Shown here: piece by piece, positions 17,004-59,235 of the stretch
Position numbering within the stretch: the first letter of the stretch is position 1
How the letters are laid out: the number at the start of each line of letters is the position of its first letter
Origin: Bugula neritina
Lineage: Eukaryota > Animalia > Bryozoa
Assembly (NCBI GenBank): GCA_964035545.1
Contig: OZ037772.1
Span: 8,425,150-8,489,149, forward strand
Reading direction: 5' to 3'
Length of the DNA stretch: 64,000 nucleotides
Notes under the pieces: model-generated
Told to the model about the DNA's origin: nothing
Database searches by the model: none
The model's input: the letters and a program-made list of their open reading frames with translations, nothing else
Translations under genes and position numbers: made by a program

Positions 17004-19047
17004 CTACGCAGTGTGTTTCTTCATATGTGCAAGAAGTTTATCTTTTTGGCTGAATGACTTATTACACACATTGCATAAAAATGGCTTCTCTCCCGTGTGT
17101 GTTCGCATATGTTTGATTAGGGTGCTTTTTCGAGAAAATGACTTATTGCACGTATGGCATAAATATGGTTTCTCTCCGGTATGTGTCTTCATGTGTTGGT
17201 TTAGATTATCCCTGGTACGGAAGTTCTTTGTACAGACATGACATGGAAATGGTTTTTTTTCTGTGTGTGTTTGTAAATGTTGCTGTAAGTTACTTTTCTG
17301 GCTAAAGGATTTTGGACAAATGTGACATGAAAATGGTTTCTCTCCCGTGTGTGTTTTAAAGTGCCGAGTAAGATGTTTCATAATTTTTGTCTTATAGTTA
17401 CACTGAGGACATTTCTTTATACCCTGCTGTTCTTTATTTTTCTCAAGACCAGCTTCTTGCGTTGACTCATAATCACAAACATCATGTAAAGTTGTATTCT
17501 CCTTGATCACTTCTTCTTTCTGATCAAGGACATCTGTAGGTTTGTTGGCAACATTAGGTTCTTTGAGTAGACAGCTGTCATATGGTGTGGCCTCTATTGG
17601 AAAAGAGTTTTGGTTGCTTGTATCAACTTCAAGAACTGAAATGAAAATAAGTTAAGTTTTAAACTAACATGTGGTAATTTTTGTCGTTTTAATAATATCA
17701 TGTGATCTCAGTTTAATTTGCAATTGCAATGAGATAACAAATCTGATGGTCTTTGAGTTATCTATCAAGACACACTCACCTGTTGAAATGACTTTCGTTG
17801 TAGTAGGAAATCCTAAATCTTGATTAACCTGAGAGATAACTTCAGACAGAGAGACATCACATTCTTCTGGTAGAAAACAGTCAAACACTAAATCCTGCTT
17901 TTTGGGATGTTGTGACTCTTGTTGGTAGTTAAAAAGATCTGAATGTCCACTCTCTACCAGTTCTTCCATATAAGTGTCGGATACTGTTGTTGGCATACTA
18001 AGGAAAGTTTGATTGTCTGTATTGACATTAAAACTTTGAGATTCTAAAGTTACAGAATTTCCAGGGGAGCTGCAATTGGTTACTAAAAGATTCCATTCAG
18101 CACCATGCCTTTCTTCGCATGATGACTCCTGTCTGTAATGATTAGGTTCTTTGGATGAATAATCTTCACTTAAAACTTTAAAAGCCACAGAAAAGATTTC
18201 AGACAGAGAATCCTCATGTTCTTCTGGTAGAAAGATCTGAATGTACACTCTTTACAAGTTCTTCTATATAAGAGTCAGATACTGTTTGATTGTATGTATT
18301 GACATTAAAACTTTGAGAGTCTGAAATTACAGAATCTCTCAGAGAATTGTTATTAGTTACTAAAGGATCCCACTCAGCACCACGCCTTTCTTCACACTGT
18401 GGCTCCTGTCTGTAATCATTGTGTTCTTCAGATGGATAATCTTTACCTAAAACTTCAAAAGCTGAAGTAAAGATTTCAGACAGAGAATTATCATGTTCTT
18501 TAGGTGGACAGTGGTTATACACTGAAGTTTCTATGTTAATATAATCCTGAGGGTTTTTATCAACTGTGGAAGTCAGAGGAACTGATTCTGCAGAAAAGCT
18601 GGGAGGTTGAGCAAAGTTGTCCCAGAGAGCAGCAATCTCCCACTCAACATCACTTTCAGAGATCTGGTGAGATTCTTGCATTCTTTTGCTTGAATTTTGC
18701 GGACTCGCTTCTGTTTCTATGACTGAAAGATAATTAAAACGTGTACAAATTTGCATCACAACATATTTTATTAACAAACACAACCACAGACACCAGGCTC
18801 AAATGCTCGCATATTTCGCTCAGCTTGCTCGCTTGCCCACTCACTCACTCCCACGCACACACTCACATACTTAATAACCATAAATGTGCAAAATTAACAC
18901 AAATTTGTACACTCAAACTAAAAAGTTAAAATTTAATCATTCATCTTTCGAAACTGATAAACAATTAGACAGCCGCAAAATATAATCAAGCCAACAACTT
19001 TTTAATTTTTACAGAATGCTATACTTACATGGCTGACGCCCAGACAT
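17004..19047 (-). pseudogene. C2H2 ZNF copy A (5 fingers plus a decayed 6th); frameshifted in exon 2
   Basis: Exon1 19047-19029 (ATGTCTGGGCGTCAGCCAT|gtaagt). Exon2 18722-17780 with a frame break near 18235. Exon3 from 17635 is fused in frame to the finger exon, ending 17004. TGEKPF linkers. Confidence 0.75.
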
Positions 19048-22267: not shown

Positions 22268-25224
22268 ATGTCTCTGACTCAACCATGTAAGTATAATATA
22301 CTATGGAAACTATTATTTGTTTGGTTTGCCATTATTTTACAGTGGCTTTATTTATGCATCACATGTAAAACACTTTCCCCGCATCAGGATTCGAACCACA
22401 GACCTCCAGTTTGCAAGCAGGCCTGCTAGCCAGTTACACCACAGGGGCCACTGGGTCAACTAATCACTGTGATATTTATTAATAAGATGATGAATAAAAG
22501 TAATCTGTATAACTTTGATGTAGACATTTTGTGTAGCAAATCAACTCGTGGGTATTTTGCTCCCATATTAAGCTTATTGGGCATTATTGACGGAATGTGT
22601 GTATGTTGGTGTGAGTGAGTGAGTGAGTGAGTGAGTGAGTGAGTGAGTGAGTGAGTGGGTGAGTGAGTGAGTGAGTGATTGAGTGGGTGAGTGAGTGAGT
22701 GAGTGAGTGAGTGAGTGAGTAAAGAAGTAGTGGGTGAGTGAGTGGATGGGTGAGTGAGTGAGTGAGTAAGTGGGTGAGTGAGTGAGTGAAGGAAGGAGTG
22801 GATGAGTAAAGGAAGAAGTGAGTGACTGAACTTTGAGTAAATATATCAATGTAAACTGGTCAAGGCTTTTTTTACTTTGCAGATGTAGAACCACATGCAC
22901 TATCTCAAACACCAAACAACCGAATGCAAGAACCTCTTCAGATATCTAAAAAGGATGTTGAGTGGACAGTTCCTGCTCTCTGTAAGACTTTTATTCCATG
23001 TAATAACTTTCCCCTAAACTCAGTTCCTCTGACTTCCACAGTTGTTACAAATACTCAAGACTATGCAAACATAGAAACTTCAGTGTGTAATAGCTGCTTA
23101 CCACAAGAACCTGATGTTCCTTTATCTGAAGTTATTTCTGAGGCTTTTGGAGTTTTATCTGAAGACTATTCATCTGTAGATCCTGATCTTTACAGACAGG
23201 ATTCATATTGTAGAGATGAGTATAGTGCTGAGTGGGATCCTTTAGTAACCAATAACAGTTCTGAGAGACACTCAGTGAATTTAGACTCTCTAAGTTCTAA
23301 TACCAATGCAGGCAATCAAACTTTTCTTAATATGCTAACAGCAGTACCCAACACTTACATAGGAGAAGGTGTGGAAAACGAAGTTTTAGATATTTTTAGC
23401 AACCACCAACAATTACAATTTCTCAGGAAACAAAGTTCAGTCCATGACAACTATCTACCAGAAGAAACTGATGTCCCTCCGTCTGAATGTATTTCTGAGG
23501 CTTTCCCAGTTTTTGGACAGAATACTACAACAGAAGTCATCGCAACTGGTGAGTATGAATATTAGACAGAGAAAAGTAAAACTACCAAAGCGTTTCTTCT
23601 AAATGCAATTGCCAATTAAATTGAATTATATTAAAGAAATATATTGAAAAAACAAAGATTATATATTTATGAAGAATTATATTATAGCTTTACTTATTTA
23701 CATTTCAGTTCCCACAGTTGATGCAACCAACCAAGACTCTTTTTTTAGTATGTCAAAATCTTACACAGTCTTAAACCTGGCAAGATTTTTTACTTAATTT
23801 AATAATCTTCATAAACTTATCACAATTCCTAAACTGGTCATTCCTGTGAAAACCGTGATAGTACAATTTTTAAGCAGCTAGGCTGAGGAATTATTTCTTA
23901 AAGCATATTTTATACCAGATTCAATGATCTCTACAAGCTCTGATTACTTTAAACTTTCCATCTCCATGAGACGTTCTGATAGTAAAGTTTTTAGACAAAC
24001 TTATCACTTGTTTGTAGTCTAGACACAGGAGAAGTGATGGCTAGATGTATTTCTTGACATCATTAACAACCTTTACCAATGGTCAACCCATGACCTTGTT
24101 TTAACTAATGTATACTGGTTTTAACCACAAGTCCGCTACTTGTTTCTGGAATTAATTAATTTAATAAATCTTTGAATTGATTTATTTAGTTATGGTTTCT
24201 TGATTAGTGGCACATGGGTAACTGATTGAAATGCTTGCATGTTTTTCAAAAAAAAGTATTAGAATGTGATAAGAAACTTAAATAATTTATCATTAATGAA
24301 TTTTGAATGTCAACATAATATCATTAGTACTGCTGTTTTACAGGTGAAATACCAGTGCATTTAAACAAAGGAGACACTTCTGAGAAGCTACCAGATCTAG
24401 TGTACAAAGAAGCACATGAATTTAAGTGGAGAGATTGTTTTAGAGAAATAAACAAAGATATACAAACTCACACTGATCAAAAAGTGAATAACAGTGTCAA
24501 CAAATCCGTAGATGTCACTGGTCAAAGTGAAAAAGTGATTAAAGAGAAGACAACTTTACATGATGTTTGTGAGAATGAGTCAACACAAGAAGCTGGTGTT
24601 GAAAAAAGTGAAGAGCAGCAGAGCAAAAGGAAATGTTTTCAATGTTCAATATGTAGCTACAAGGCAAGATACAAGTGTTATCTCAACAGACACATGAGAA
24701 TACATACTGGAGAGAAACCATTTTTATGTCATATTTGTAAAAGTGCATTCAGTCTCAAATATACCCTACAACAACATATGAGGACACACACTAGAGAAAA
24801 ACCATTTTCATGCAATATCTGTAATAAATCATTCACTCAAAAATGTAGTCTTCCTTTACATATGAGGACACACACTGGAGAGAAGCCATTTTCATGTCAT
24901 ATTTGCAAAAGTGTATTCAGTCAACGAGCTACCCTGCAACAACATGTCAGGACACATACTGGAGAGAAACCATTTTTATGTCATATTTGTAAAAGTGCAT
25001 TCAGTCTTAAATACAATCTACAGCAACACTTGAAGACACATACTGGAGAGAAACCATTTTCATGCAATGTCTGTAATAAATCATTCACTCAAAAATGTGG
25101 TCTTCGTGTACATATGAGAACTCACACTGGAGAGAAGCCATTCTCATGCGATGTGTGTAAGAAATCATTTACTCAAAAACCAAGTCTTCTATATCACACT
25201 AAAATGCATACTAAAAATAAATGA
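22268..25224 (+). CDS. C2H2 ZNF copy B, 7 fingers, intact, ~534 aa
   Basis: Exons 22268-22286 (ATGTCTCTGACTCAACCAT|gtaagt), 22883-23548, 23709-23747 (shortened, possibly skipped) and 24344-25224. All introns are phase 1 and the ORF is open. Seven Cx2Cx12Hx3H fingers with TGEKPF linkers. Confidence 0.85.
22377..22460 (-). mobile_element. tRNA-like SINE head (family 2) in intron 1 of ZNF B; paralogous copy at 26889-26965 in ZNF C
   Basis: Minus strand GGCCCCTGTGGTGTAACTGGCTAGC...GGTTCGAATCC has A and B boxes, but the anticodon stem does not pair. Confidence 0.6.
22610..22826 (+). repeat. (GTGA)n microsatellite in intron 1 of ZNF B
   Basis: Direct; equivalent tracts occur in every copy that retains intron 1. 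Confidence 0.95.
23965..24140 (-). mobile_element. old SINE family 1 copy in the last intron of ZNF B (positionally equivalent copies ~28505-28690, ~42298-42450, ~50578-50760, ~55435-55625)
   Basis: 'cacaggagaagtgatggctagatg' and 'acccatgaccttg' match 'cacaggagcaattatgactagatg' and 'tccatgacctcg' of the copy at 10974-11177. Confidence 0.65.
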
Positions 25225-26780: not shown

Positions 26781-29629
26781 ATGTCTCTGACTCCACCATG
26801 TAAGTATAATATACTATGAAAACTACTAATTGTTTGGTTTGCCATTATTTTGTGGTGGCTTTATTTATGCATCAATTGTAAAACACTTTCCCTCAACAGA
26901 ATTTGAACGACAGACCTCCAGTTTGTAAGCAGGCCTGCTAGCCAGTTACACCACAGGGGCCACTAGGTCAACTAATCACTATGATATTTATTAATAAGAT
27001 AATGAATAAAAATAATCTGTATAACTTAGGTGTAAACATTTTGTGTAGCAAATCAACTCGTGGGTATTTTGCTCCCATTAAGCTTATTGGGCATTATTGA
27101 CGGAATGTGTGTATGTTGGTGTGAGTGAGTGAGTGAGTGAGTGAGTGAGTGAGTGGGTGAGTGAGTGAGTGAGTGAGTGAGTGAGTGAGTGAGTGAGTGA
27201 GTGAGTGAGTGATTGAGTGGGTGAGTGAGTGAGTGAGTGAGTGAGTAAAGGAAATAGTGGGTGAGTGAGTGAATGGGTGAGTGAGTGAGTGAGTATGTGG
27301 GTGAGTGAGTGAGTGAAGGAAGGAGTGGATGAGTAAAGGAAGGAGTGAGAAAGTGAACTTTGAGTAAATATATCAATGTAAACTGGTCAAGGCTTTTTTT
27401 ACTTTGCAGATGTAGAACCACATGCACTATCTCAAACACCAAACAACCGAATGCAAGAACCTCTTCAGATATCTAAAAAGGATGTTGAGTGGACAGTTCC
27501 TGCTCTCTGTAAGACTTTTATTCAATGTAATAACTTTACCCTAAACTCAGTTCCTCTGACTTCCACAGTTGTTACAAATACTCAAGACTATGCAAACATA
27601 GAAACTTCAGTGTGTAATAGCTGCTTACCACAAGAACCTGATGTTCCTTTATCTGAAGTTATTTCTGAGGCTTTTGGAGTTTTATCTGAAGACTATTTAT
27701 CTGAAGATCCTGACCTTTACAGACAGGATCCATATTGTAGAGATAAGTATGGTGCTGAGTCGGATCCTTTTCTAACCAATAACAGTTCTGCGAGACATTT
27801 AGTGATTTTAGACTCTCAAAGTTTTAATACCAATGCAGGCAATCAAACTTTCCTTAATATGCTAACAGCAGTACCCAACACTTACATAGGAGAAGGTGTA
27901 GAAAATGAAGTTTTAGATACTTTTAGCTACCACCAACAATTAGAACTTCTCAGGAAACAAAGTTCAGTCCATGACAACTATCTACCAGAAGAAACTGATG
28001 TCCCTTCGTCTGAATTTATCTCTGAGGCTTTCACAGTTTTAGGACAGAATACTACAACAGAAGTCATCGCAACTGGTGAGTATGAATAGCCTATTATATA
28101 GATAGATAAAAATAAAATCACCAAAGCGTTTCCTCTAAATGCAATTGCTAATTAAATTGAATTATATTAAAGAAATATATTAAAGAAAAACAAAGATTGT
28201 ATATATTATACCAATAATTAGATTATAGCTTTACTTATTTACATTTCAGTTCCCACAGTTGATGCAACCAACCAAAACTCTTTTTTTAGTATGTCAAAAT
28301 CTTACACAGTCTTAAACCTGGCAAGATTTTTTACCTTATTTAATAATCTTCATAAACTTATCACAATTCCTAAACTGGTCATCTCTGTAAAAAAAACCCT
28401 GGTAGTACGATTTTTAAGCAGCTAGGCTGAGGACTTATTTCTTAAAGCACATTTTGTACAAGATTCAATGATCTCTACAAGCTCTGACTACTTTGAAATT
28501 TCTATCTCCATGAGAAGTTCTGATAGTAAAGTTTTTAGACAAACTTATCACCTGTTTGTAGTCTAGACACAGGAGAAATGATGGCTAGATGTACTTCTTG
28601 ACATCACTAACAGCTTTTACCAATGGTCAAACCCATGACCTTGTTTTAACTAATGTATACTGGTTTTAACCACAAGTGCACTAATTGTTTCTGGAGTTAA
28701 TTAATTTAATAAATCTTTCAATTGATTTAATTAGGCATGGTTTCTTAATTAGTGACATGCACATGGGTAACTGATTGAAATGCTTGCATGTTTTTCAAAA
28801 AAAAGTATTAGAATGTAATAAGAAACTTAAATAATTTATTAATGAATTTTGAATGTCAACATAATATCATTAGTACTGCTGTTTTACAGGTGAAATACCA
28901 GCGCATTTAAACAAAGGAGACACTTCTGAGAAGCTACCAGATCTAGTGTACAAAGAAGCACATGAATTTAAGTGGAGAGACAGTTCTAGAGAAATAAACA
29001 GAGATATACAAACTCAGGTTGTTCAAAAAGTGAATAACACTACCAACAAATATATAGATGCCATTGGTCAGAAAGAAAAAGTGATTAAAACGAAGACAAC
29101 TTTACATAATATTTGTGAGAATGAGTCAACACAAGAAGCTGGTCTTGAGAAGAACAAAGAGCAGCAGAGCAAAAAGAAACGTTTTCAATGTTCTCAGTGT
29201 AGCTACAAGGCAAGATACAAGTGTTTTCTCAACAGGCACATGAGAATACATACTGGAGAGAAGCCATTTATATGTGAAATATGTGGGTCTGCTTTTACCT
29301 GGAAAGATGCTCTTATTAAACATATAAGAACACACACCAGAGAAAAGCCATTTCCATGTCATATTTGTACAAGTGCATTTAGTCAAAGATTTACCCTGCA
29401 ACAACATCTCAAGACACATACTGGAGAGAAACCATTTTCATGTCATATTTGTAAAAATGCATTTAGTCTAAAATTTACGCTACAACAACATATGAAGACA
29501 CACACTGGAGAGAAACCATTTTCATGCAATGTCTGTAAGAAATCATTCACTCAAAAATGTGGTCTTCGTGTACATATGAGAACTCACACAGAAGAGAAGC
29601 CATTCTCATGCGATGTGTGTAAGAAATAA
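26781..29629 (+). CDS. C2H2 ZNF copy C, 5 complete fingers, 6th truncated by a premature TAA
   Basis: Exons 26781-26799, 27410-28075, 28250-28288, 28890-29629; near-identical to B outside the finger array. A TCA>TAA change stops the last finger; its remainder still reads to TAA at ~29686. Confidence 0.75.
27120..27350 (+). repeat. (GTGA)n microsatellite in intron 1 of ZNF C
   Basis: Direct. Confidence 0.95.
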
Positions 29630-30347
29630 TTCAATCAAAAAACAAGTCTTCTAAATCACACTAAAATGCATACTAGAAATTATTAATATGTTCTTCTATA
29701 ATCCTAGTTAGTGCAAATCAGCTGTCTGAACCTTCCTGTTACCTTCCTTATGAAAAAATATTCACGTAGAAAAATTAGCTTACACTTGGTTTCAAATTAT
29801 TTTAACTTGTACTTGACAGATAAATTAGGAAGAAAACTCCTTTATATTATTTTCATGAACATGCACATTACATACATATGTTAAAGACAGTATGTCTGAC
29901 AAATGGTTAGGGTGTTTAGATATCTGTATACTTAGATCTAAGATGAATATTATAATAATTGTAAGTTATGTTAATACAAGAAAATTATAAATTAAACTCA
30001 GACATGATTACATAATCAATATCTATAACTTTATTTGTGTGGAAATTGACAATTTGTCTTAGTTTTCTTACAACTAATTTTAGAAGATCTTATACTTAGT
30101 AAATATGTTTTATCTCAACTGTTTTTAGTTAATCATAGTTTTATGCCATAGTTGTTTAGGAATCATTTTGATGTTTAATGTTAGTAAGATTTTAGATTTT
30201 TTGAGTTATAGTTAACCAAAAATCTTTATCTTGTTCAATTTAAATGTTTGTTTTAATTTGTAACTAATGTGTTTACACACGGGAGTCTCAGTTCTGCTTT
30301 TTGTTCTACTGCGACATTAGTTTTTGTGAAATATAAATTAAATAAAA

Positions 30348-31129
30348 TAGAAATAAACAAAGATATACAAACTCACACTGATCAAAAAGTGAATAACACT
30401 ACCAACAAATCTATAGATACCATTGGTCAGAAAGGAAAAGTGATTAAATCGAAGACAACTTTACATAATATTTGTGAGAATGAGTTAACACAAGAAGCTG
30501 GTCTTGAGAAGAACAAAGAGCAGCAGAGCAAAAAGAAACGTTTTCAATGTTCTCAGTGTAGCTACAAGGCAAGATACAAGTGTTATTTCAACAGACACAT
30601 GAGAATACATACTGGAGAGAAGCCATTTATATGTGAAATATGCGGGTCTGCTTTCACCTGGAAAGATGCTCTTATTAAACATATAAGAACACACACCAGA
30701 GAAAAGCCATTTCCATGTCATATTTGTACAAGTGCATTTAGTCAAAGATTTACCCTGCAACAACATCTCAGGACACATACTAAAGAGAAACCATTTTCAT
30801 GTCATATTTGTAAAAATGCATTTCGTACCAGATGCAACCTACAGCGACATTTGAAGACACATACCGGAGAGAGACTATTTTCATGTCATATTTGTAAAAA
30901 TGCATTTAGTCTAAAATTTACCCTACAACAACATATGAAGACACACACTGGAGAGAAACCATTTTCATGCAATGTCTGTAAGAAATCATTCACTCAAAAA
31001 TGTGGTCTTCGTGTACATATGAGAACTCACACTGGAGAGAAGCCATTCTCATGCGATGTGTGTAATAAATCATTTACTCAAAAACCAAGTCTTCTAAATC
31101 ACACTAAAATGCATACTAGAAATTATTAA
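30348..31129 (+). pseudogene. ZNF copy D: orphan finger exon (7 intact fingers) lacking exons 1-3 and the normal acceptor
   Basis: The 3' flank of C runs directly into mid-exon sequence 'agaaataaacaaagatatacaaactcacactgatc' at ~30348. The ORF start at 30269 lies in non-coding flank. Confidence 0.7.
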
Positions 31130-32292: not shown

Positions 32293-32683
32293 TGTGGTAA
32301 ATTTATGTTGTGTGTGTGTGTCCTTTGTTGCCGAGATCGGTACTTCGGTCCTCCAAAACACCGATATGCCGATTCTCGGCATATCGGAATACCGAAGTAC
32401 CGAAATGCCGGATTCGGCATTTCGGATTCCCGAAGTGCCGATATTCGGTATTTCGGGCCTCCGATCTCGGCAAACAAAAGAATGTCTTTGTCCTGCATGT
32501 ATATAAAAGCCAGCGAGTTCCAGTATAGTTTAGTCTACTACTGGAGCTCGCTGGATAAAGACCATTGATTCACTCGGACTATACTACAATAAAGCTATCT
32601 ACTTTCTACCTTATTTCTCGCCTTGTTTCTCATAACAAGCATGTAAAGCACTAGTTTCATTCACAACCCACAAAACTATCACA
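32293..32683 (+). repeat. 5' LTR (TGTGGTA...TATCACA), 391 bp
   Basis: TG...CA ends with an imperfect 7-bp inverted repeat; TATA box 32500-32508; AATAAA 32588-32593; three substitutions versus the 3' LTR by eye. Confidence 0.95.
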
Positions 32684-32684
32684 T

Positions 32685-32702
32685 TGGTGGCAGCAGTGGG
32701 AT
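32685..32702 (+). promoter_or_regulatory. primer binding site, tRNA-Leu-type
   Basis: TGGTGGCAGCAGTGGGAT begins 1 nt after the LTR and is complementary to a tRNA 3' end ATCCCAC(T/C)GCTGCCA-CCA, typical of eukaryotic tRNA-Leu. Confidence 0.85.
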
Positions 32703-32734
32703 TCTACGAATAGCTAGTTGCTGAGAGGAATAGG

Positions 32735-33635
32735 ATGGCCCCAGGGGAGTCAGCCCCTGAGGCAACAGCAGCACCAGCCCTCACTGTTGAGGCGCTGGTA
32801 ACAGCCCTCCAAGGATTGCGGGGGCAAGGACAGGCATCACCTGGTAACAGGTATCGCCTCCAGCCCCCGACTTTCGGAGGAGATGGAGACGTGGAACAGT
32901 TCATCAAGGAGTTCGAGGACGTGGCCACCACCGCTGAATGGCCAGTACGGGTGCGCGTCCTCCAACTCCAGGGCCTGTCTAACAGGCCGGGCCAGGAACT
33001 TCGCACTGGGACCCGACGAAGCCCACATCATGCGGGCTCTTAGGGCCCGGTTCGGCCTGACCACGGAAGAGGCGTCAGACCAGCTACAAGTGATGAGGAG
33101 AGACCGAAGGACACCTCTGGAAGATCACGCTAACGAGGTAGAGCGCCTGGCTCAGGCTGCTTTCGGTCACGCCACTGGCGAAGATCGGAAGCGCCTCGTT
33201 TTTAACGCGTTCTTCCGGAGCGTGAACCACCCGGACCTCCAGCGGTACTGGCTGGCCACGAAGGTCAAGAGCCTGGACGAGGCACTAGAGATGGGGAAGG
33301 CCTACTTCCAAGTAGAAGAACCACGGAGGGCGAACTACGCAGCTCGCCAGGTGGCCGGAGATACAGAAGAGGTACCCCCAACCCCACAAGTGGCAGCAGC
33401 AGCTACTCCGTCGCCCGAGCAGACGCAGCTCAACATGCTGATGGGCATGATGAAAGGCCTGCAGGCTACGGTGGCGGAGTTGCAGCGCAACCAGACGGAC
33501 AGGCGGGCTCCCCGCTCGCGGGACGACCCTGTCCGCCCCCCTCTGCCCACTTGTTGGGAGTGCGGGATGCCAGGACATGTGAGAAGGCACTGCCCTAAGG
33601 GACAGAAGTCTTTAAACACCCGAGGCTCACGGTGA
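32735..33635 (+). CDS. gag: Gag (1-nt frameshift near 32968), C-terminal CCHC knuckle
   Basis: PPTFGG...EQFIKEFE...W capsid-like N-terminus in ORF 32735; ORF 32883 carries CWECGMPGHVRRHC. Confidence 0.88.
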
Positions 33636-33655
33636 ATTCCGCCACCCGTGGGCCC
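33611..33655 (+). promoter_or_regulatory. programmed -1 ribosomal frameshift signal (T TTA AAC plus downstream hairpin)
   Basis: The heptamer at 33611-33617 is in gag phase (TCT TTA AAC); the -1 frame is open into the protease ORF at 33632. Stem gctcacggtg...cacccgtgggc starts ~8 nt downstream. Confidence 0.85.
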
Positions 33656-36600
33656 CACGCCAATCCGGTCCGGGATAGGACTCGGAAAACAACAGAAGAA
33701 ACCTCTCCAGAGTCGACCTACATCGAGTGGCACGCAAACCGGAGATCTCGGAGACCGAAAGGCCTACCCGATCCTCCTGCCCTGCCACTCGATACCCGGA
33801 TGCAGCTAGAAGAAACCGGATGGCAGGCACCTCGGAGATCTCGGAGACCGCAAGGTCTACCCGATCCTCCAGCCTGGCCACTCCGTAACCGGTTCGCGGG
33901 GTTGCCCGAGGAGGTTGTGGAGGAAGATTCAGCTTACTCGCAAGAGTACCCCAAGCTACCCTCCCGACCTCAGAAAACCCCCGTTGTCTCTAAGACGAAG
34001 AGGAGGCCCGCTGTGCGGACCCAAGTTGTGTCTCCCCCAAGGACTGACCACTCCAGGAGCACCCAGCCATATGGAAGCAGCTACTTCCTGCCCGGAAAGA
34101 TTGCGGGTAAAGCTGCCACATTCCTACTGGATACTGGGTGCACTACCAACCTGCTGAGTAGGCGTATCTTTGACACTCTTGGTGCACGAGAGCGGGCGAG
34201 CCTCGAGCCGTATGAAGGTGCGCATGGTACGTTGGCGGACGGATCATGCATTCCTTTCTACGGCGTCATTTCACTACCTGGACGCGTCCGTGATCAAGCA
34301 ATTCACGAGACGTTCATAGTCAGCCAGCTGAAAGAGGACGCCATCTTGGGAATGCACTTCCTGGAGAAACACCAGTGTCACATGGATTTCCAGAAGTCAG
34401 TGGTGATGATGGCTGGGAAGGAACTTGTCTGTGTTGACAAGTTTGGCAGGCCCTTGGTGGGCGGAGTCCAGGTAGTGCGGGACTGCACAGTTCGGGGAGG
34501 TCCCAGGCGACTCTTCGATGCAGAGTCAACTGCAAGGGGATCGCCGGCCTGGGGATGGTTGAAGGAACGCACGGAGCCATCCGACTAGCAAACAGCCTGA
34601 ATTGGCTAGATTGTCGGCAAGAGCTCCTCGTGCAGTGCATCAACCCCTTCACGGAACCTGTCCGATTATCGGCCGGAGCGCTGGTGGGGAAGTACCACTC
34701 CATCCAGGAAGCGGATGTGGGTCCGGCACTGGAGACAGTGGCTGACACCCAGGGGAACCCCCCTCACACCAGACGAGGAGCAGTCCCGGAGCACCTGGCT
34801 GACCTGTATGGCGGAGCATGCGGGAACTGTACGAGTAGTACTGAACGCCAAGTACTGGCTCAACTATTCGCGGAGTACAGTGATGTCTTCAGTCGTGGCG
34901 ATGGAGACATGGGGCTGACTAAGGTTATCTCCGACGAGATACCCCTGGCAGCCGGCACCACTCCCATCAGGCAGCCTACCCGACGTCTAGGCCTGGAGAA
35001 GGAGAAGGAGGTGAGCCGACAGGTACAGGATCTTCTGGACCGGGATCTGATTGAGCCTGCCCACGGTGCGTGGAGCTCCCCAGTGGTTCTGATCAAGAAG
35101 AAGGATGGTAGCTGGAGATTCTGTGTGGACTACCGCAGACTCAACAGCGTTACCATCCAGGACGCCTACCCTCTCCCACGGATAGATGAGTCTCTAGATG
35201 CCCTCGCGGGTAGCAAGTACTTCAGTACTTTGGATCTGCTTAGCGGGTACTGGCAAGTGCCCCTCAGTCCTGATGCCCAGGACAAAGCAGCATTCATTAC
35301 TCGCGGCGGGCTCTGGAAATGGAAAGTACTGCCATTCGGACTAACGTCCGCTCCGGCAACATTCCAACGACTCATGGAGCAAGTCCTCAGTGGGTTACAC
35401 TGGAAGACCCTCCTCATCTATCTGGACGATTTCATTGTCATCTCCCCAGACTTCTCGACTCATGTCAGTCGTCTGCGGGAGGTCTTTGACCGCCTCCGGG
35501 CTGCTGGACTAAAGCTGAAGCCCTCCAAGTGTGCACTCCTGCAGCCAGAAGTCACGTACCTGGGCCATGTGGTTGGCCGTGATGGGGTCGCTACCGATCC
35601 AGAGAAGGTACAAGCTGTGAAGGAGTGGACTGTCCCCCGTGACCTCCCTGAGTTGCGTGCCTTCCTGGGCCTAGTAGGGTACTACCGGCAGTACATACCT
35701 GGGTTCGCAGGAGTGGCTCAGCCATTAAATTGGCTGACCGCAAAGGGAGTCCGGTGGCAGTGGACACAGGAGGAGCAGCAGGCATTCAACCACCTCAAGC
35801 AACGGCTAATGGAAGCGCCAATCCTGGCGTATCCTGATCCAGCCAAGGAGTACATCCTGGACACTGACGCCAGTGACCACAGCGTGGGAGCCGTCTTGTC
35901 TCAAGTCCAGGGTGGAAGTGAGGTGGTCGTGGCTTACTACAGCAAGACTCTCGCGGCCGCCGAGAAGAACTACTGCACCACTAGGAAGGAACTCCTAGCA
36001 GTAGTCAAGGCGGTCAAGCACTTTCGGCCATATCTGTATGGGAAATCGTTCCGTCTGCGAACAGATCATGCATCACTGATATGGCTGTGTAAACGTGCAG
36101 AGCCCTCGAGCCAGGTGGCTCGTTGGCTAGAGATTCTTGCCGAGTTCTCTTACCGGATAAAGCACCGTGCAGGCCGGAAGCATGGGAACGCCGACGGCAT
36201 GAGCCGCCGGCCGGTAGAGGACTGTAAGCAATGCCTGCACATTGAACAGCGGGACGGGGGACCCGCTCGCCTTGACGTGAAAGCAGAACTAGTGGAGGGC
36301 ACCACCTACTAGTGGGAGCACGGCCATCTTCGGACCGAAACCCACCAGGACGGTGTCCAGGCGCTCCACGCCAACCCTACTCTGCACCAGAATGTCAAGG
36401 AGCTGTGCCGACTCCAGGAGACGCTACCCGGCGCGGTAGCGGACATCTTCCGGGCCAAGAAGGAGGGCCGACGGCCTAGCGAGGAACAGCAGCGGCAGGG
36501 AGACGTTGAGTTCCAACTCCTCTGTCGTCGCTGGGATGCCCTCAAGGTCAGTCCTGATGGCCTCCTGATGATAACGTTAGCAGCAGACAACCGCCAGCAG

Positions 36601-38030
36601 AAGAGGGACCGCGTCATCTGTCCACGCGCCCTCCGGCGGGAACTGATCTGGGACACCCATAAGCAGGCTCATGCTGGAGTCAGTCGGGTTATCAGGTGTC
36701 TGCGGCTGCGTTGGTATTGGCCCGGAATGACTCGGGACGTACGACTGCGGGTACGGCAATGCGAGGTCTGCCAAGCTAGCAAGCATGGCCGCCCCACGGA
36801 AACCACTGGTCGACGCCGGCTGTACGCTGGTCGACCGTGGCAAGTAGTGGCGGTAGACCTCGTCGGGCCTATGCCGTTATCCGCCAGAGGGAACACCTGG
36901 ATACTGGTGCTCACGACCACTTTACCCGGTGGGTGGATGCTCTGGCTATTCCAGACGCCACCGCCCCCACGGTGGCCCGGACCCTGGACCAACATGTGTT
37001 CTTTTACCTCGGTTTGCCCGAGCAGATACATACGGACCAGGGTGCCCAGTTCCAGTCCCAGCTCATGGGACACCTCTGCCGGATATGGGGGGTGAACCAG
37101 AGTCGGACCACCCCATATCACCCGCAAGGGAACGGAGTCGTAGAGCGGAACAACAGGATGTTGGGTGACGCGCTCCGGAGCCTGCTACTTGGTCGAGGTC
37201 AGGAAGAATGGGACGTGGTGCTGCCGCAGATCATGCGGGCTTACCGCAGCATACCACACTTCAGCACGCAGGAGACCCCAAACTTCCTGATGCTAGGCCG
37301 AGAGACGCGGGTCCCGGAACACCTGACGTACCATGTTCCTGCCCCCGAGTCACCGGTACACGAATATGTGGAGGGTCTGATGGACATCATGGGCAAAGCT
37401 CATCCGCTCGTGCAAAACTCATGCGCTGCGCACCCAGCAGTGGCAGACCCGCACAGAGGACTCGGAGGAGCCCCCGTTGTACCAAGTGGGAGACTGGGTC
37501 TGGATGGTGAGCTACCGTAGGCGACGCGGACAGTCGGCTAAGCTTCAGCCCAACTTCGTCGGCCCCTACTGCGTAGTGGAGGTGCTGCCCAACCACACGT
37601 ACCGTGTGGAGCGCTCTGGACAGATCTCTGTCCAGAGCGAGCAGCGCCTCAAACCTTACCATGCCAGCCCAGACGCGGTGGGTCAGGCTCCACCCCTCCT
37701 GGAGCCCCACCGTCAGCCCAACCGTCGAGGACGGGCCACCCAGCCCCGAGAGGTGGAGATTATGGTCCCCAGGGAGACGGACCAGGAGCAGGCCGCCTTG
37801 ATAGAGCAGCTGGAGCGGCAGCAGAGAGCGGAGCGGGAACAGGAACAGCGGCAAGCCCTTGGATCACAACCCTTCCCGGGGGAGGACACCCCCACCCCCG
37901 TACGGGGTGAAGACGGGGACCCCCCTACTAGGGCAGCCCAGGAGCCACCAACACCACCAGTGCCTGTTCCACTTGAGAGGAGCCAGCGGCCAAGAAGACC
38001 TCCCAGGTACCTGGCAGACTATGCTGTAGG
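33611..38030 (+). pseudogene. pol: Pol (aspartic protease, RT, RNase H, integrase), disrupted
   Basis: LLDTGC protease; WRFCVDYR, LPFGL and YLDD RT; DTDAS/ELLAV/TDH/NADGMS RNase H; HHCC, VDLVGP/HTDQG/VERNN and GPY integrase, ending RSQRPRRPPRYLADY. Lesions: frameshifts near 34493, 36916 and 37400-37430, and a TAG at 36310. Confidence 0.93.
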
Positions 38031-39612
38031 GCACCTGGAGTGGCCCCCTCCTGAGGACGACCCCCCCCACACTGACTACCACCCCATCTTGGTTGGAAAT
38101 TCCCTCCATCATCCCGGAGGATTCCACCAAGAAGAAGAAATGGCTGACCGAATTTCGGAAGACACTCGATCACGCGAGTTGTCTTTCCGAAATGCGGGGG
38201 AAATTCCCACGAGCCACGCAACTCGGGCTTCAGCAGGTAAAACTTCTGAAGCACGAGGTTCGGCCATTTCTCATTCTGATTTCACACAGCTCGCACGGCA
38301 GTTACAGCTCAAGCTAAATTCTGATTCTAATACTCATTTTGATTTTAACACTGTTCTCCAGACGCTATCAGCAGCTATGGGAATTACTTTACCAGACAGG
38401 CAATCAGGTATTTCTTCTAGATTAGATCCTCCAGTTGCGGAGTCTAGTCAAACTAAAGTAGACTGGTCTTTACTAGACTTACTTGGTTCTGATTTCTTAG
38501 AACCGGAGGCCGAGATGGATCTTGGAGATGACTCTGCCATTGATACTTTGTTAAATCACGACGTAGGCTCAGTCAATTTCTGCGATACACCTCGGCCCTC
38601 GGTTTTTAATTTAACTCCATACACACCTGTGCCGAATTTCGGCGATAGTGAGACCGGCTTATCACAGCCTCTACTATCTATTCTAGAGGAGCGTATGGAC
38701 ATTGAGGAGGCCAGTCGGTCCGACTCCCCTCTCCCACCGGCCCTTGCTTCGGCTTCTACCAGCCAGCAGGCCGCCACCTCCTCCACAGAGGTGTGTTCCG
38801 CCATCGCTAGTGGCCCTGACCCCAAACCGGTCGAGCTCCAGCTCACGGCCGGGGAGGAGCAGGGCATCCTACACGGCGACCACCTGCCAACAGAAGAAGA
38901 TAACTCCCCAATACTGGCCCTGCCTCGGGCCCTGGTCGCCCGCCAGTATTGGGTGACTGGACCCACCAATCTTAAGATTGGTGAAGCTTGCGGTGAGCCG
39001 GGCAACCGCATCTGCCATGAGTGTAAGAGGAAGTTCTCCTCTGCACGGCGGTTGCGTGTACACACCCCACAGCACTACATCAATGTGTTTTGCCCGTGTG
39101 GGGAGTTCTCCTACCAGAGAGACTATGTGTTGAGACATCAACGCATAGCTCACTGCCACACGGGCTACACGTTTGCTGTAGACCAGGCCTCCTTTCCCGA
39201 GTTTCGGGACCTGGTGCTGCCACACGTGGCGGATCCCCATAAATGGGCTGCTCTCGCCCTGGGATTCCCCGCATGTAGGCCTGTTCGGGAAGAAGAAGGG
39301 GAGCCCGCCGCGACACCCCAACCGGCAGCCACCCAGCCACTTCGGGTCATGCTGGCACGGGTCGGACCAGGCGCCAGGACCGATTCATCGGACCTGGGCC
39401 CCCGGCCCTCGGCGGCGGGCGAGAAGCAGACGCACCGCCAGCGACGTCCTACCCATGGTACCACCGACCGCCCCAGACACCAGACGTCGGCCCAGTTGGC
39501 AGAGGAGGTACAGCATCTCCGCCGGCAGCTCCGCAGGTATGAGGAGGAGCTGGGGCAACTCAGGAGACGTGTTAGCCGCCTGGAGCGGGGCCGATCTGGA
39601 GACTGCCGCTGA
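37477..39612 (+). CDS. integrase C-terminus continuing in frame into a ~530-aa accessory region: acidic segment, two C2H2-type fingers, coiled coil
   Basis: 711-aa ORF. CHECKRKFSSARRLRVHTPQH (Cx2Cx12Hx3H) and CPCGEFSYQRDYVLRHQRIAH (Cx1Cx12Hx4H) at 39013-39153; heptad LAEEVQHLRRQLRRYEEELGQLRRRVSRLE at ~39495-39585; in-frame aaaATGG at 38140. Confidence 0.8.
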   Translation: MYQVGDWVWMVSYRRRRGQSAKLQPNFVGPYCVVEVLPNHTYRVERSGQISVQSEQRLKPYHASPDAVGQAPPLLEPHRQPNRRGRATQPREVEIMVPRETDQEQAALIEQLERQQRAEREQEQRQALGSQPFPGEDTPTPVRGEDGDPPTRAAQEPPTPPVPVPLERSQRPRRPPRYLADYAVGHLEWPPPEDDPPHTDYHPILVGNSLHHPGGFHQEEEMADRISEDTRSRELSFRNAGEIPTSHATRASAGKTSEARGSAISHSDFTQLARQLQLKLNSDSNTHFDFNTVLQTLSAAMGITLPDRQSGISSRLDPPVAESSQTKVDWSLLDLLGSDFLEPEAEMDLGDDSAIDTLLNHDVGSVNFCDTPRPSVFNLTPYTPVPNFGDSETGLSQPLLSILEERMDIEEASRSDSPLPPALASASTSQQAATSSTEVCSAIASGPDPKPVELQLTAGEEQGILHGDHLPTEEDNSPILALPRALVARQYWVTGPTNLKIGEACGEPGNRICHECKRKFSSARRLRVHTPQHYINVFCPCGEFSYQRDYVLRHQRIAHCHTGYTFAVDQASFPEFRDLVLPHVADPHKWAALALGFPACRPVREEEGEPAATPQPAATQPLRVMLARVGPGARTDSSDLGPRPSAAGEKQTHRQRRPTHGTTDRPRHQTSAQLAEEVQHLRRQLRRYEEELGQLRRRVSRLERGRSGDCR

Positions 39613-39900
39613 GACTATTTGTTTAGTATTTTCTTTCCTATTCTTATTTCCTTGTTTTTTTATATATATATATATGTGTGTAAGTTCTTCATGTAATGTA
39701 TGTACCTATTCATGCTCTGTTTTCTTGTGTGTGCATAATTTTCCCTGTTTTTTTTGTATTATTAATGTCACTACATGTTTGCCGTATTTGTTTTTGTGTG
39801 TTACTTATCAACTGTGTGTTTTATTGTCGTGTCTTTTCCTGTTGCGTGTTTGTGTTGTGTACGCCTCTTTATCGGAAAGCATGCTTTCCGATGGGGGATG

Positions 39901-40290
39901 TGTGGTAAATTTATGTTGTGTGTGTGTGTCCTTTGTTGCCGAGATCGGTACTTCGGTCCTCCGAAACACCGATATGCCGATTCTCGGCATATCGGAATAC
40001 CGAAGTACCGAAATGCCGGATTCGGCATTTCGGATTCCCGAAGTGCCGATATTCGGTATTTCGGGCCTCCGATCTCGGCAAACAAAGGAATGTCCTTGTC
40101 CTGCATGTATATAAAAGCCAGCGAGTTCCAGTATAGTTTAGTCTACTACTGGAGCTCGCTGGATAAAGACCATTGATTCACTCGGACTATACTACAATAA
40201 AGCTATCTACTTTCTACCTTATTTCTCGCCTTGTTTCTCATAACAAGCATGTAAAGCACTAGTTTCATTCACAACCCACAAAACTATCAC
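39901..40290 (+). repeat. 3' LTR (terminal A missing), preceded by a short purine tract GGGGGA (39893-39898)
   Basis: Direct repeat of 32293-32682. Confidence 0.95.
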
Positions 40291-40980: not shown

Positions 40981-43900
40981 ACAGAACTTTGAGTAAATAT
41001 TTTAATGCAAACTGGTAAAGGCTTTCTTTACTTTGCAGATTTAGAACCACATGAACTATCTCAAACGCCAAGCAACCAGATGCAAGAACCTCTTCAGATG
41101 TCTAAAAAGGATGTTGAGTGGACGATTCCTGCTCTCTATAAGACTTTTATTCCATGTAATAACCTACCTTACCCTAAACTCAGTTCCTCTGACTTCCACA
41201 GTTGATACAAACACTCAAGACTATGAAAACATAGAAACTTCAGTGTATAACAGCTGCCTACCTGAGGAACCTGATGTTCCTTTATCTGAAGTTATCTCTG
41301 AGGCTTTTGCAGTTTTATCTAAAGACTATTCATTCAAAGATCTTGATCCTTACAGACAGGAGCCATATTGTAGAGATGAGTATAATGCTGAGTGGAATCC
41401 TTTAGTAACCAATAACACCTCTTTAAGACATTCAGTGAATTTAGACTCTCAAAGTTTTAATACCAATGCAGGCAATCAAACTTTTCTTAATATGCTAACA
41501 GCAGTACCCAACACTTATATAGAAGAAGGTGTAGAAAATGAAGTTTTAGATACTTTTAACACCCACCAACAATTAGAACCTCACAGGACACAAAATTCAA
41601 TACATGACAACTATCTACTAGAAGAATCTAATGTTCCTCAGTCTGAAGCTATCTCTGAAGCTTTTACAGCCTTAGAACAGAACACTACAAGAGAAGTCAT
41701 ATCAACTGCATGGTGAGTATGATTAGATAGATAAAAATAAAACCACTAAAGCTTTTCCTCTAAATGCAATTGCTAATTAAATTGACTTATATTTAAGAAA
41801 TATATTTAAAAAAAACAAAGAATATATATTTACCAAGAACTAGATTATAGCTTTACTTACTTACATTTCAATTCCCTCAGTTGATGCAACAATGCAACTA
41901 AGACTTTTTTCTAGAAGCTTCAGTATAAGGCAACTATGTACCAAAAGAATCTGATGTTCTTTCATCTGATTTTTTTTCTGAGGAACTTGGAGCTTTAGGC
42001 GGGCTAAAGAGTGCACAAAATTACAAATCATTGGGTTAGTATGTCAAAATGTTATACGGTTTTAAACCTGATAACATTTTTTAGCTAATTTAATGATCTC
42101 CATAAACTTATCACAATTCTTAAACTAGCCATCTCTGTGAGAACCCTGGTAGTACACTTTTCTAAGGTGGCAACAGATTATTTATTGTCAAAAAACTATT
42201 TTATTGCAAAACCAATAAAAACTGAGTTAAGTTTTATCCTTTTTTTGCAAAACTAATAATGCCCATGAACTCATAACTGTTTGTAAAGACACAGTCTCTG
42301 TGAGAATCTGTGGTGGTAAAATTTTAACGGCTCAATTTCTATTGTAAAGAAGGAGAAATTATGACTGGATGCTCTTAACATGACATCATCAAGGAGAATT
42401 ATCAATACTTAAACCTTTGTCTTCTTCTAAGGACTATTCATGGTTCCTCCCAAGTTTATTTATTTTATTAAAGCTTTGCATAAACAAAGTGAAAATGTTT
42501 TAAACATTAAACTGTGTGCATTTTGTTTAAAGAAGAAATAAGAATTTAAGGAAGCATTCTAATGCGGTCATATTTTAATTTGGGTTGTGTTAATAAAGTT
42601 CAAAGCAATGAATAAAGCTTGAATCGTAAAATTATTGTTCGTACTGTTGTTTTACAGATAGAATGCAAGAGGGTGAAAATACAGGAGACCCTTCTGAACT
42701 TTTATCTGATGTACTATACAGAGGAACCCTCGAATACAAGTGTAGAAACTATCCTAGAGCAATAAGCAATGATATGAAAAATTACACTAATCTAAAGGTA
42801 TGTGACATTGCCCACAAATTTATCAATGCTACTGGTCAGAAAGAGGTAAATAAAGAGAAAACAACTTTACATAATATTTTTGAGAATGGGTGGACACATG
42901 AGGCTAGTCTCAAAAAGAATAAGGAACAGCAGAGAAAAGACAAATGTTTTCAATCTTCACTGTGTAGCTACAATGCAAGACACATGAGTCATCTCAACCA
43001 GCATATGAAAAAACACACTGGAGAGAAACCATTTTCATGTCAGATTTGTAAAAGTGCATTTACTCACAAAACTACCCTAAAACGACATATGAAGACACAC
43101 ACTGGAGAGAAACCATTTTCATGTCAGATTTGTAAAAACCCATTTAGTCAGAGAAGTGCCCTACAGCAACATATGGGAACACACACTAAAGACAAGCCGT
43201 TTTCATGTGATGTGTGTGGGAAATTATTCAGTCGGAAATATACCCTTGTGACACACATGAGAACTCACACTGCAGAGAAACCATTTTCATGTCATGTTTG
43301 TAAACATTCATTTGGTTTCAAACAAATCCTACAGCTACATATGAGGACACATACTAAAGACAAGCCTTTGTCATGCAATGTCTGTAATAAATCATTCAAT
43401 TGAAAGGGTAACCTTGTGACACACATGAGAACTCACACTAGGGAGAAACCATTTCTATGCCATGTGTGTAAGAAATCATTCACTCACAAAGAGAGTCTTC
43501 ATTCACACACTAAAATACCTACTAAGAATCAATCTGTTCTTTCAAAATATAAGTGACTATAACAAATTAGCTGTATTAGACTGCAACTTTTCATAAAAAG
43601 TCTTGCACAGGAAAATTACCTCACAAGTGGTGATGTTTGAAAATTGTTCTAAATTTTACTTGAAAGGTGGAATGAGAAGGAAACTTATTTATTTCCATGT
43701 TTAGAAACATTCAAATTAACCAACCACATAAGTTATATTTATTCTAATTACAGTTGAAAGTTTATCTTTATTTTTTATTAAAATTGTATTTACGAGATTC
43801 AATATAAAACGTAGTCTAAAACAGGATGTGATCTTAAAAAGTATTTTCTAGTTTAATTGTTGAAGTTTCATGTCATAAGTACACTTAGGTTTTGTTTTAT

Positions 43901-57988: not shown

Positions 57989-59235
57989 TTATGGTAGCGT
58001 AGATTGATTTTTAGTGTGTATTTTATTGTGTAAATAAAGGTTAGCTTTTTGGTTGAATGATTTATTACACACATTGCATAGAAATGGTTTCTCTCCTGTA
58101 TGTGTCCTCATATGTTGTTGTAGAAGAGCATTGCGACTGAATGCACTTTTACAAATATGACATGGAAATGGTTTTTCTCCAGTGTGTGTTCTCAAATGTA
58201 CAACAAGATTCGATTTTTGAGTAAATGACTTATTACACACATTGCATAGAAATGGTTTCTCTCCATTGTGAGTTCGCATATGTAAAACTAGACCACATTT
58301 TCGAGTGAATGATTTCTTACACACATTGCATAGGAATGGTTTCTCTCCATTGTGAGTTCGCATATGTAAAACTAGACTACATTTTCGAGTGAATGATTTC
58401 TTACACACATTGCATACAAAGAGTTTCTCTCCTGTATGTATCCTCATATGCCGTTTCAGGGTAGTTCTGTGACTGAATGAATTTTTACAAAAATGACATG
58501 GATATGGTTTCTCTCCGGTGTGCGTCCTGATATGACTGATGAGAGCATTTCTCCAGGCAAAAGCAGCTCGGCATATTTCACATATAAATGACTTTGTTCC
58601 AGTATGCTTTATCATGTGCCGGTTGAGATTACCCATGTGTCTTGTCTTGTAGCTACATAGCGAACATTTAAAACATTTCCTCTCAATCTGCTGCTCTGTA
58701 TTCTTCTCAACACCAGCCTCTTGTGTTGATCTACACTCACACACATCATAGACAGTTGTCTTCTCTTTGATCACTTTTTCTTTATGATCAAAGAGCTCTA
58801 TAGATTTTTTGGCAAAGTTATACACTTCTTGATCAGTCTGAGTTTCTTTTTTATATGCACTGCTGCTTCTAATATTGCCTTAAACATGCATAATTTTTGT
58901 TGAAAAAAAAACACATGCTTTTAATTCTGCTACCCATGTGTGCCTAATTCTTTACAGAATTTTACACAATTTTAAAAACAGTCATGATTTGATGGAGCCG
59001 GATTATTACATTCGCTTCAAAACGTGCATATCAGGTTGTTGAACATTATTTTGACATGTGTTAAACAAATACTAACCTGATGATTTGTAGTCCACTGAAA
59101 GATTCCATCCTAAAACTTTAAAAACCGCAGAAACGGTTTCAGACAATGGATTATCAGGTTCTTCAGGTAGAGAGTGGTCATATGTTGAAGCTTCTCTAAG
59201 ATGAGAGTGTTGGTTGCTTGCATCAACTGTGGGAA
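57989..59235 (-). pseudogene. ZNF copy I: exon 3 (59235-59077) plus an 8-finger exon (ORF 58825-57989); exons 1-2 not found
   Basis: Eight intact fingers; exon 3 is open, with motif LPEEPDNPLSETVSAVFKVLG. Homology to the family stops near 59375 and the normal finger-exon acceptor is missing. Could still be expressed. Confidence 0.65.

Follow-up and report, generated by a model that had tools for sequence, protein, structure and literature searches.

A 24-residue motif repeated in the N-terminal exons of a Bugula neritina C2H2 zinc-finger family: a putative docking peptide conserved between gene clusters at synonymous as well as amino acid sites

Introduction

Lineage-private zinc-finger families are a recurrent route by which animals arrive at new gene regulators. 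KRAB zinc-finger genes belong to tetrapods, ZAD-ZNFs to insects, and FiNZ-ZNFs to fish; for bryozoans, we know of almost nothing reported on families of this kind. Here we describe one from Bugula neritina (genome 216 Mb, about 30% G+C), found in a window, by which we mean the whole stretch of 64,000 nucleotides (nt) that was analyzed (OZ037772.1, positions 8,425,150 to 8,489,149). Nine C2H2 zinc-finger genes, A to I, lie in tandem within the window, and the whole cluster was studied over 174 kb, that is, the window plus the next 110 kb. The exons upstream of the fingers repeat a motif of 24 residues with the consensus [Y/C]LPEExDVPLSEVISEAFxVLGxN, also written YLPEExDVPLSEVISxAFxVLGxN. A literature search found no description of this zinc-finger family.

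The explanation that we favor, tentatively and at a little under an even chance, is that the motif is a private docking peptide that becomes helical on binding, that its triplication in this cluster has since made it partly redundant, and that a nucleotide-level constraint or gene conversion acts on the same stretch. The Bugula family would then be a minimal case, with its regulatory front end reduced to one 24-residue module present in one to three copies. If the motif were only a private acidic docking motif, it would be an ordinary addition to the list that holds KRAB, ZAD, and FiNZ; the conservation of its synonymous sites raises the question of whether selection sees the peptide, the RNA, or the DNA.

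Distribution of the motif and its conservation between clusters

Motif copies were located with a regular-expression scan and with a 24-position hidden Markov model (HMM) built from the copies. Across the 174-kb cluster the HMM has 65 matches, and genome-wide, with E ≤ 0.01, it has at least 99, all of them inside five to seven zinc-finger clusters (C8 at 8.44 to 8.59, 10.73, and 4.62 Mb; C1 at 26.74 Mb; C4 at 16.6 Mb; plus singletons). The nucleotide core of the motif, described below, occurs within three mismatches at 79 sites, against 0 for a reversed control, and the repetition is thus far beyond chance. The copies in the home cluster, in the remote clusters, and on one remote genomic contig each lie near a C2H2 zinc-finger exon on the same strand, and in the remote clusters the zinc-finger exons, with a related leader, are directly downstream of the motif. 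Remote copies score as high as home copies (50 to 63 bits), and their flanks are undetectable by BLASTN.

Comparison of four remote-type proteins with nine members of the home cluster shows how sharply the motif stands out between subfamilies. Motif columns are 69% identical, versus 28% for the other alignable columns (Mann-Whitney p 7e-7), and much of the remaining N-terminus is unalignable. The non-synonymous p-distance is 0.17 in the motif versus 0.45 elsewhere, and the ratio of non-synonymous to synonymous differences per site (pN/pS) is about 0.5 to 0.65. Second codon positions are the best conserved, at 0.87 versus 0.71 in flank blocks (p 0.012). Searched as DNA, 198 nt around the second motif copy of gene F matched the remote clusters over an island of roughly 120 nt alone, which starts about 15 to 30 nt before the motif; most alignments end a few bases from the splice donor. 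Island identity in the remote clusters is 81 to 87%, the level of distant home-cluster paralogues. As far as these sequences indicate, the motif is the single piece common to all clusters of the family, and it may be regarded as an ancestral module that occurs about once per gene in the remote clusters.

A typical gene of the home cluster has three fixed motif positions, two in exon 2 (M1 and M2) and one in exon 3 (M3). M1 lies in mid-exon 2 and is followed by S-E-D-Y. M2 comes 357 nt after M1, leaving about 25 nt to the exon-2 donor, and N-T-T-T-E-V-I-S-T follows it. The end of exon 2 is in phase 1, and exon 3 is small and frame-symmetric. The features of the window that bear on the motif are as follows.

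Gene A, minus strand: motif copies at 18439-18510 and 18162-18230, and a third copy with a C-terminal truncation at 17832-17873.
Gene B exon 2, plus strand: 22883-23548, with the acceptor AG ending at 22882, the donor GT at 23549-23550, and an open reading frame (ORF) of 213 residues.
Gene B M1, plus strand: 23095-23166, CLPQEPDVPLSEVISEAFGVLSED, HMM score 52.3 bits.
Gene B M2, plus strand: 23452-23523, YLPEETDVPPSECISEAFPVFGQN, HMM score 49.6 bits, 25 nt upstream of the exon-2 donor.
Gene B zinc-finger exon, plus strand: 24355-25224, seven C2H2 fingers (Pfam zf-C2H2 and zf-H2C2_2).
Gene C: M1 at 27622-27693, M2 at 27979-28050.
Gene E: M1 at 41255-41326, M2 at 41612-41683.
Gene F, plus strand: M1 at 45881-45949, M2 at 46238-46309, exon-3 copy M3 at 46550-46621.
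Gene F exon 3, plus strand: short form 46533-46646 (114 nt); a long form would start at 46488 (159 nt); read from splice sites.
Gene G, plus strand: one exon-2 copy at 50061-50132, given as 50061-50129 by the motif scans; exon-3 copy at 50375-50443.
Gene H, minus strand: exon-2 copies at 56417-56488 and 56057-56125, exon-3 copy M3 at 55754-55825 (47.4 bits).
Gene I, minus strand: exon-3 copy M3 at 59102-59173 (49.0 bits).

These copies agree with a sequence-only reading of the window, which had placed the motif in exon 2 of A, B, C, E, F, G, and H and in exon 3 of F, G, H, and I. Its per-gene copy counts are borne out by the HMM, with the qualification that the three copies of gene A are not in one frame. 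Gene I shows exon 3 alone because its exon 2 sits about 27 kb off, past the end of the window. In gene B, M1 and M2 form an 82-nt direct DNA repeat, 74% identical, at the 357-nt spacing; the likely start codon of its exon 2 is at 22924, and the exon is in phase 1 at both ends if coding begins upstream. The zinc-finger exon of gene B, scanned over 24355-25221, matches PF00096 (E 4e-31) and PF13465 (E 8e-55) and so belongs to the C2H2 class. M2 of gene F is the copy closest to the family consensus (60.1 bits). Both candidate lengths of gene F exon 3 are multiples of 3, the choice of acceptor being read from splice sites only.

A transcript-like contig from a related sample (Logan, run SRR4020085), 81 to 92% identical to cluster members, bears on this exon structure. 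It is without the 480 to 580 bp that lie between an upstream non-coding exon and exon 2, and it joins exon 2 in frame to the exon 3 of a paralogue, a segment of 116 nt (about 117 nt by frame) in which the motif takes up 24 of 39 codons. The same contig (1-1310) has four motif copies. It combines exons 1 to 3 of one gene type with exon 3 and the second half of exon 2 from the neighboring gene type, and with sequence found just past the zinc-finger exon of gene H in the window, both finger exons being skipped. A read-through or chimeric transcript could account for this, as could an artefact of assembling paralogues.

Remote clusters have about one motif for each gene, a gene spanning roughly 4 kb. 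In the three remote-type exons that were read, the motif occupies the 3' end of the N-terminal coding exon, with the splice donor close behind, and the remote alignments of the DNA search place it likewise. The upstream context of this single copy is like that of M1 or M3 (N-T-E-x-T-V-Y-x-N-Y), and its downstream context is like that of M2 (G-L-N ... S-T-G-E, then the donor). Because the remote copy mixes the two contexts, the three-copy layout appears to be derived from a one-copy ancestor. It would have arisen by an old internal duplication, giving M1 and M2, and an exon duplication, giving M3, with the three positions already fixed before the cluster expanded.

Conservation of the 27-nucleotide core

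Between clusters the nucleotides of the motif are conserved along with its amino acids. The 27-nt core GATGTTCCTCTGTCTGAAGTTATCTCT, which encodes D-V-P-L-S-E-V-I-S, occurs exactly at 24 sites, which belong to five clusters and lie on three contigs; gene F carries it in M2 at 46256-46282. If synonymous sites were saturated, codon usage predicts that about 3e-4 of copies would retain all nine core codons. Each leucine position holds its own codon, mostly a non-preferred one (CTA, CTG, and TTA). Even where the core differs from the family form, the change can be silent, as in the core of gene B M1 (23113-23139, B/C-type), which has three changes, three of them synonymous and 0 non-synonymous.

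Codon tests between clusters used three remote contigs together with the coordinate and identity tables of the genome-wide searches. Where subfamilies share an amino acid in the motif, codon identity is 0.78 to 0.80, versus the value of about 0.39 that local codon usage predicts. The first zinc finger, a positionally matched control that may not be strictly orthologous, gives 0.57 versus 0.49 expected, near saturation. Divergence of the motif is equal between subfamilies and within the cluster at all three codon positions, whereas neighboring blocks diverge more between subfamilies. The excess at third positions over flank blocks is 0.785 versus 0.636 (p 0.06), a value that comes from three remote loci and is suggestive. 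Judged from these comparisons, between-cluster conservation is as strong at synonymous sites as at the amino acids, and peptide selection alone would be insufficient to explain it. A second constraint on DNA or RNA, or gene conversion, would have to act too, since in the core silent sites and amino acids are conserved to the same degree.

This pattern is what would be expected if the conserved unit were mainly a nucleic-acid element, the 27-nt core in its island of roughly 120 nt at the exon 3' end, with the peptide a by-product or second layer. Such an element could serve exonic splicing control (of the small cassette-like exon 3 and the exon-2 donor), be a family-wide small-RNA target, or be a DNA site for a multi-finger protein. 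The exact core copies with their codons, the excess of codon identity over the first-finger control, the equal divergence within and between subfamilies, and the ends of most remote DNA alignments close to the splice donor all favor it, as does residual variation at a neutral ratio of synonymous to non-synonymous changes (see below). Other observations do not fit. No stable RNA fold was found in the motif region of eight copies (z-scores of −0.6 to +1.2 against shuffles), and RNA structure was rejected on these grounds as the cause of the nucleotide conservation. A genome scan found no core copy or near-complement outside the zinc-finger clusters; there is therefore no obvious small-RNA gene. 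M1 is in mid-exon, distant from splice sites. Moreover, the third-position excess and the first-finger control carry the limits given above, and the remote counts are inflated, since many of those copies arose from one another by recent duplication. We regard a mainly nucleic-acid element as unlikely, although it deserves more weight than the other alternatives treated below. The narrower proposal that the 27-nt core is a family-wide nucleic-acid signal within coding sequence, with the repeated peptide secondary, seems to us unlikely by a further step. If it were true, the core might be the recognition site of a multi-finger member of the family, giving self- or cross-regulation of the clusters, or else it might place roughly 70 genes at once under splicing or small-RNA control.

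Copy number, recombination, and decay

Recombination between copies has left one clear trace. In gene G, the exon-2 motif is an in-frame hybrid of M1 and M2 from which the 357-nt M1-M2 interval has been deleted. The 150 nt upstream match the M1-upstream sequence of paralogues at 63 to 85%, versus 54 to 59% for M2-upstream, and the 60 nt downstream match M2-downstream sequence at 73 to 85%, versus 50 to 58% for M1-downstream. The switch point falls inside the shared D-V-P-L-S-E-V-I-S tract. This is the pattern of loss that unequal recombination or slippage between copies would give. The zinc-finger exon of gene G (50978-51669) has a frameshift in finger 2, near 51300-51390, and is split over two frames, and finger 1 has lost its usual CX2C cysteine pair; unless this is an assembly error, gene G is probably a pseudogene.

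The extra copy of gene A has another origin. A repeat search found the following.

Gene A tandem duplication, minus strand: 18007-18234 and 18284-18511, spacing 277 nt; a further pair has a spacing of 298 nt.

The two pairs are 82% and 88% identical. The duplication, an old one, created the extra motif copy, with one junction outside the motif, and it is out of frame, leaving exon 2 split into two overlapping frames; the repeat length does not divide by three, so translation begun at the start codon meets a stop once the first unit has been read. The copy is therefore a product of out-of-frame tandem duplication and not, as had been supposed, of motif-to-motif exchange. At 17510-17700 on the minus strand, the start of exon 3 in the same gene runs straight into the leader of the zinc-finger exon, a deletion having taken out the intron along with most of M3 and the beginning of the finger exon.

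Genes A and G, the two copy-number variants, thus both have broken frames. M1, M2, and M3 are fixed ancestral positions, each with its own signature, and DNA identity between M1 and M2 is no higher within a gene (0.654) than between genes (0.658), with the same holding for M3. Intragenic gene conversion between copies is unsupported by these values. The sequence-only reading had proposed a dose of motifs tuned by recombination between copies: such recombination does happen, as the hybrid in gene G attests, and the idea of tuning finds no support in the fixed positions and the absence of homogenization. Unequal recombination between copies would be rare, having been seen once, in an otherwise broken gene.

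Variation in copy number appears mostly to reflect the decay of redundant single copies, with a different copy decaying in each subclade. In the 95172, 103788, and 86314 types it is M1 that is degraded or has lost part of its sequence, the A/107517 type has truncated forms of M2 and M3, and the B/C/E type is without M3. Every gene retains at least one copy of at least 36 bits. With three copies present, single ones would be free to decay so long as one recognizable copy per gene persisted. Exact or one-mismatch cores make up about 31 of 42 copies in one-copy clusters versus 12 of about 62 in the home cluster, which fits a relaxed constraint on redundant copies, with the remote count inflated by recent duplication.

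Decay also raises the alternative that the motif has no specific function and is a relic, its copies kept alike by gene conversion among paralogues or by their recent spread, and subject to the same neutral drift as the remainder of the exon. Within the cluster, exon 2 has no codon-position effect (identities of 0.74, 0.77, and 0.78 at codon positions 1 to 3) and a rough ratio of non-synonymous to synonymous rates of about 0.83 (see below), motif variants are neutral-like, and several copies are visibly decaying. Yet the two copies that lie 357 nt apart in a gene match each other no better than copies from separate genes do, so conversion is not evident where it would be easiest, and the positions hold their own signatures. 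A sharply bounded, invariant core on three contigs, between unalignable flanks, is unlike conversion tracts or plain drift, and no gene is without a copy. We consider a functionless relic improbable.

Physical character of the N-terminus and selection on the peptide

Exon 2 encodes an acidic stretch, with an isoelectric point (pI) of 4.05 to 4.34, 28 to 33 Asp and Glu versus 8 to 12 Lys and Arg, and one-third Ser, Thr, Asn, and Gln. An AlphaFold2 model of the exon built on 20 aligned paralogues has a mean predicted local distance difference test score (pLDDT) of 39.8, the score being about 40 throughout, and a predicted template modeling score (pTM) of 0.11. The description of the region as acidic and probably disordered is therefore well founded.

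The motif itself has the makings of a helix. When a 42-residue piece was modeled alone (45 aligned copies), a helix ran from the L of P-L-S-E onward, with a core pLDDT of about 87. In helical hydrophobic moment, the LSEVISEAFxVL core ranks first or second within every exon 2 tested (0.45 to 0.65 versus exon means of 0.21 to 0.24), and the moment of the consensus core, 0.56, is reached by 0.17% of shuffles. The best-conserved half of the motif is DVPLSEVIS, not the bulkier EAFxVL.

One might also suppose that the N-terminal exon is a folded effector domain like KRAB or ZAD and that the motif forms one of its helices; the family expands in tandem, and the exon precedes a zinc-finger array, as in KRAB and ZAD genes. 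The AlphaFold2 scores speak against a compact folded domain of the KRAB, SCAN, BTB, or ZAD sort, as do the unalignable flanks between clusters and the outcome of the structure and family searches described in the next section. We judge a folded domain very improbable indeed.

The most likely function is that of a putative docking or effector peptide, a short helix-forming element in a disordered acidic tail that would link the fingers to a transcriptional cofactor. Like a short linear motif, the element is short, lies in predicted disorder, and is better conserved than its flanks in distant relatives. The high identity at second codon positions between subfamilies and the wholly synonymous changes in the B/C-type M1 core also favor the peptide. 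The purifying selection on amino acids that is expected of such motifs (a ratio of non-synonymous to synonymous rates, omega or dN/dS, well below 1) was not found, and this and several related observations weigh against a docking peptide. Parsimony counts on a tree of 24 exon-2 paralogues give rough within-cluster omega values of 0.83 for the whole of exon 2, 1.43 for M1, and 0.85 for M2, which give no indication of protein-level purifying selection on the motif; the same method gives a rough 0.49 for the zinc-finger exon. Ranked for fewest non-synonymous changes among 192 windows of 21 codons, M1 is 129th and M2 27th, and the best-conserved stretch of exon 2 within the cluster is the YRQxPYCRDEYSAEWDPLVTN block between them. 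Core variant types in the home cluster comprise 8 synonymous and 19 non-synonymous changes (8, 11, and 8 by codon position), where 28% synonymous is the neutral expectation. A hand count of changes in the remote clusters gives 10 synonymous and 18 non-synonymous, and omega ≤ 0.2 is rejected (p 8e-4). At hydrophobic positions, substitutions that keep hydrophobicity are 16 of 28, against 28 of 48 expected from random single-base changes. Finally, the whole-exon AlphaFold2 model has no helix at the motif.

Two earlier descriptions are accordingly qualified. The motif had been called the conserved core of the N-terminus, which holds between clusters and fails inside this one, where a codon-level comparison with the flanking exon, named in advance by the sequence-only reading as the test that could refute it, went against the motif. 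It had also been called an amphipathic helix; the core is amphipathic and helix-prone, as the hydrophobic moment and the isolated peptide indicate, and a stable helix is not what the whole-exon model predicts.

In the parsimony counts across the cluster, synonymous changes per site are fewer in exon 2 (1.98; M1, 1.25) than in the zinc-finger exon (3.40). Either a general synonymous constraint on exon 2 or finger shuffling that inflates the finger-exon count would account for this.

Homology searches

A Pfam-A scan at E ≤ 1 of three exon-2 translations and one zinc-finger exon found no KRAB, SCAN, BTB, or ZAD in exon 2, and no family reached its cutoff with the exon-2 translations. The LTI65/LTI78 PGEED repeat (PF23399) scored 20.5 bits over 15 motif residues, below its 27.3-bit cutoff, and was read as a compositional resemblance. 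A sequence search of solved structures gave chance-level matches only (e.g., a myosin light-chain helix, E about 0.6), and a search of the ESM Atlas gave no usable match to the exon.

In protein searches with the exons one by one, a word-based search gave one match, and an exhaustive search of 1.84 billion representatives gave 11, of which 7 are short fragments clearly similar to exon 2. Three fragments were traced to samples labeled with the B. neritina mitochondrial accession AY690838 or to run SRR4020081. Two further matches are very short and marginal (E 7e-4 and 1e-3), and two long repetitive proteins matching the Ser/Thr-rich stretch were taken as spurious. Relatives from outside the genome thus come from few samples only, two Joint Genome Institute (JGI) samples (the AY690838-labeled contigs) and two sequencing runs. 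Neither the core nor the M2 region was found in metagenome scans. On these searches, the family appears so far to be known from Bugula-type bryozoans alone.

Other features of the window

A G+C-rich Ty3/gypsy-like insertion lies at 32.3 to 40.1 kb (about 32300-40200), between genes C/D and E, with 53 to 62% G+C versus about 30% in its surroundings. Its ORFs include a gag-like one of 250 residues, a protease region, a reverse transcriptase/RNase H of 585 residues, an integrase split over two frames, and an extra ORF of 711 residues with a C2H2-like finger. The minus-strand ORFs at 22574-22915, 27053-27442, and 49374-49769 are long tetranucleotide microsatellites, read as (T-H-S-L)n; two are directly upstream of exon 2 of B and C, and the third is upstream of G.

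Gene C has a single exon 2 followed by two zinc-finger exons (28874-29626 and 30257-31126), the first of which encodes five fingers and then a stop, without the usual C-terminus of the family. This looks like a tandem duplication confined to the finger exon. In gene I (57992-59377 in the window), exon 2 is about 26.9 kb from exon 3, at cluster coordinate about 86309, a displacement judged against a 96 to 99.6% identical duplicate at cluster coordinates 127265-130000, which has itself lost 814 bp from its zinc-finger exon. The stretch inserted in gene I contains an ORF of 457 residues at cluster coordinate 72073.

Comparison with known systems

Among named corepressor motifs, the CtBP-binding PxDLS-type pentapeptide does not occur in the consensus YLPEExDVPLSEVISxAFxVLGxN. 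Sin3-interaction helices of the Mad1 type are amphipathic, and their hydrophobic face carries a pair of small residues (A-A); the Bugula motif has E-A-F where A-A would be expected, and the likeness is a lead only. In composition the motif resembles acidic activation domains more closely than it does a named corepressor motif. Like activation motifs that become helical on binding, it is short, lies in a disordered acidic context, presents a hydrophobic face of L, V, I, and F, and is predicted to be helical only in isolation. Unlike them, its variants show no preference for hydrophobic residues, and its conserved half is DVPLSEVIS.

At the level of nucleic acids, the closest parallel is found in human ZNF genes, in which repeated coding sequence includes microRNA sites in the finger-coding repeats and in which ZNF274 binds at gene 3' ends. 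The Bugula motif is likewise a coding stretch repeated across a whole zinc-finger family with its exact letters conserved; unlike the human repeats, it is in N-terminal exons and not in finger linkers.

As a family, the Bugula genes are most like the KRAB, ZAD, and FiNZ families. They share with these the tandem clusters, the fast turnover of C2H2 genes, the frequent broken copies, and a lineage-private N-terminus whose exons are separate from, and precede, a single large finger exon. They stand outside all three because their N-terminus is not a folded domain. Where those families have a folded domain of 40 to 75 residues, the Bugula N-terminus is a disordered acidic tail whose sole family-wide piece is the 24-residue motif, in one to three copies.

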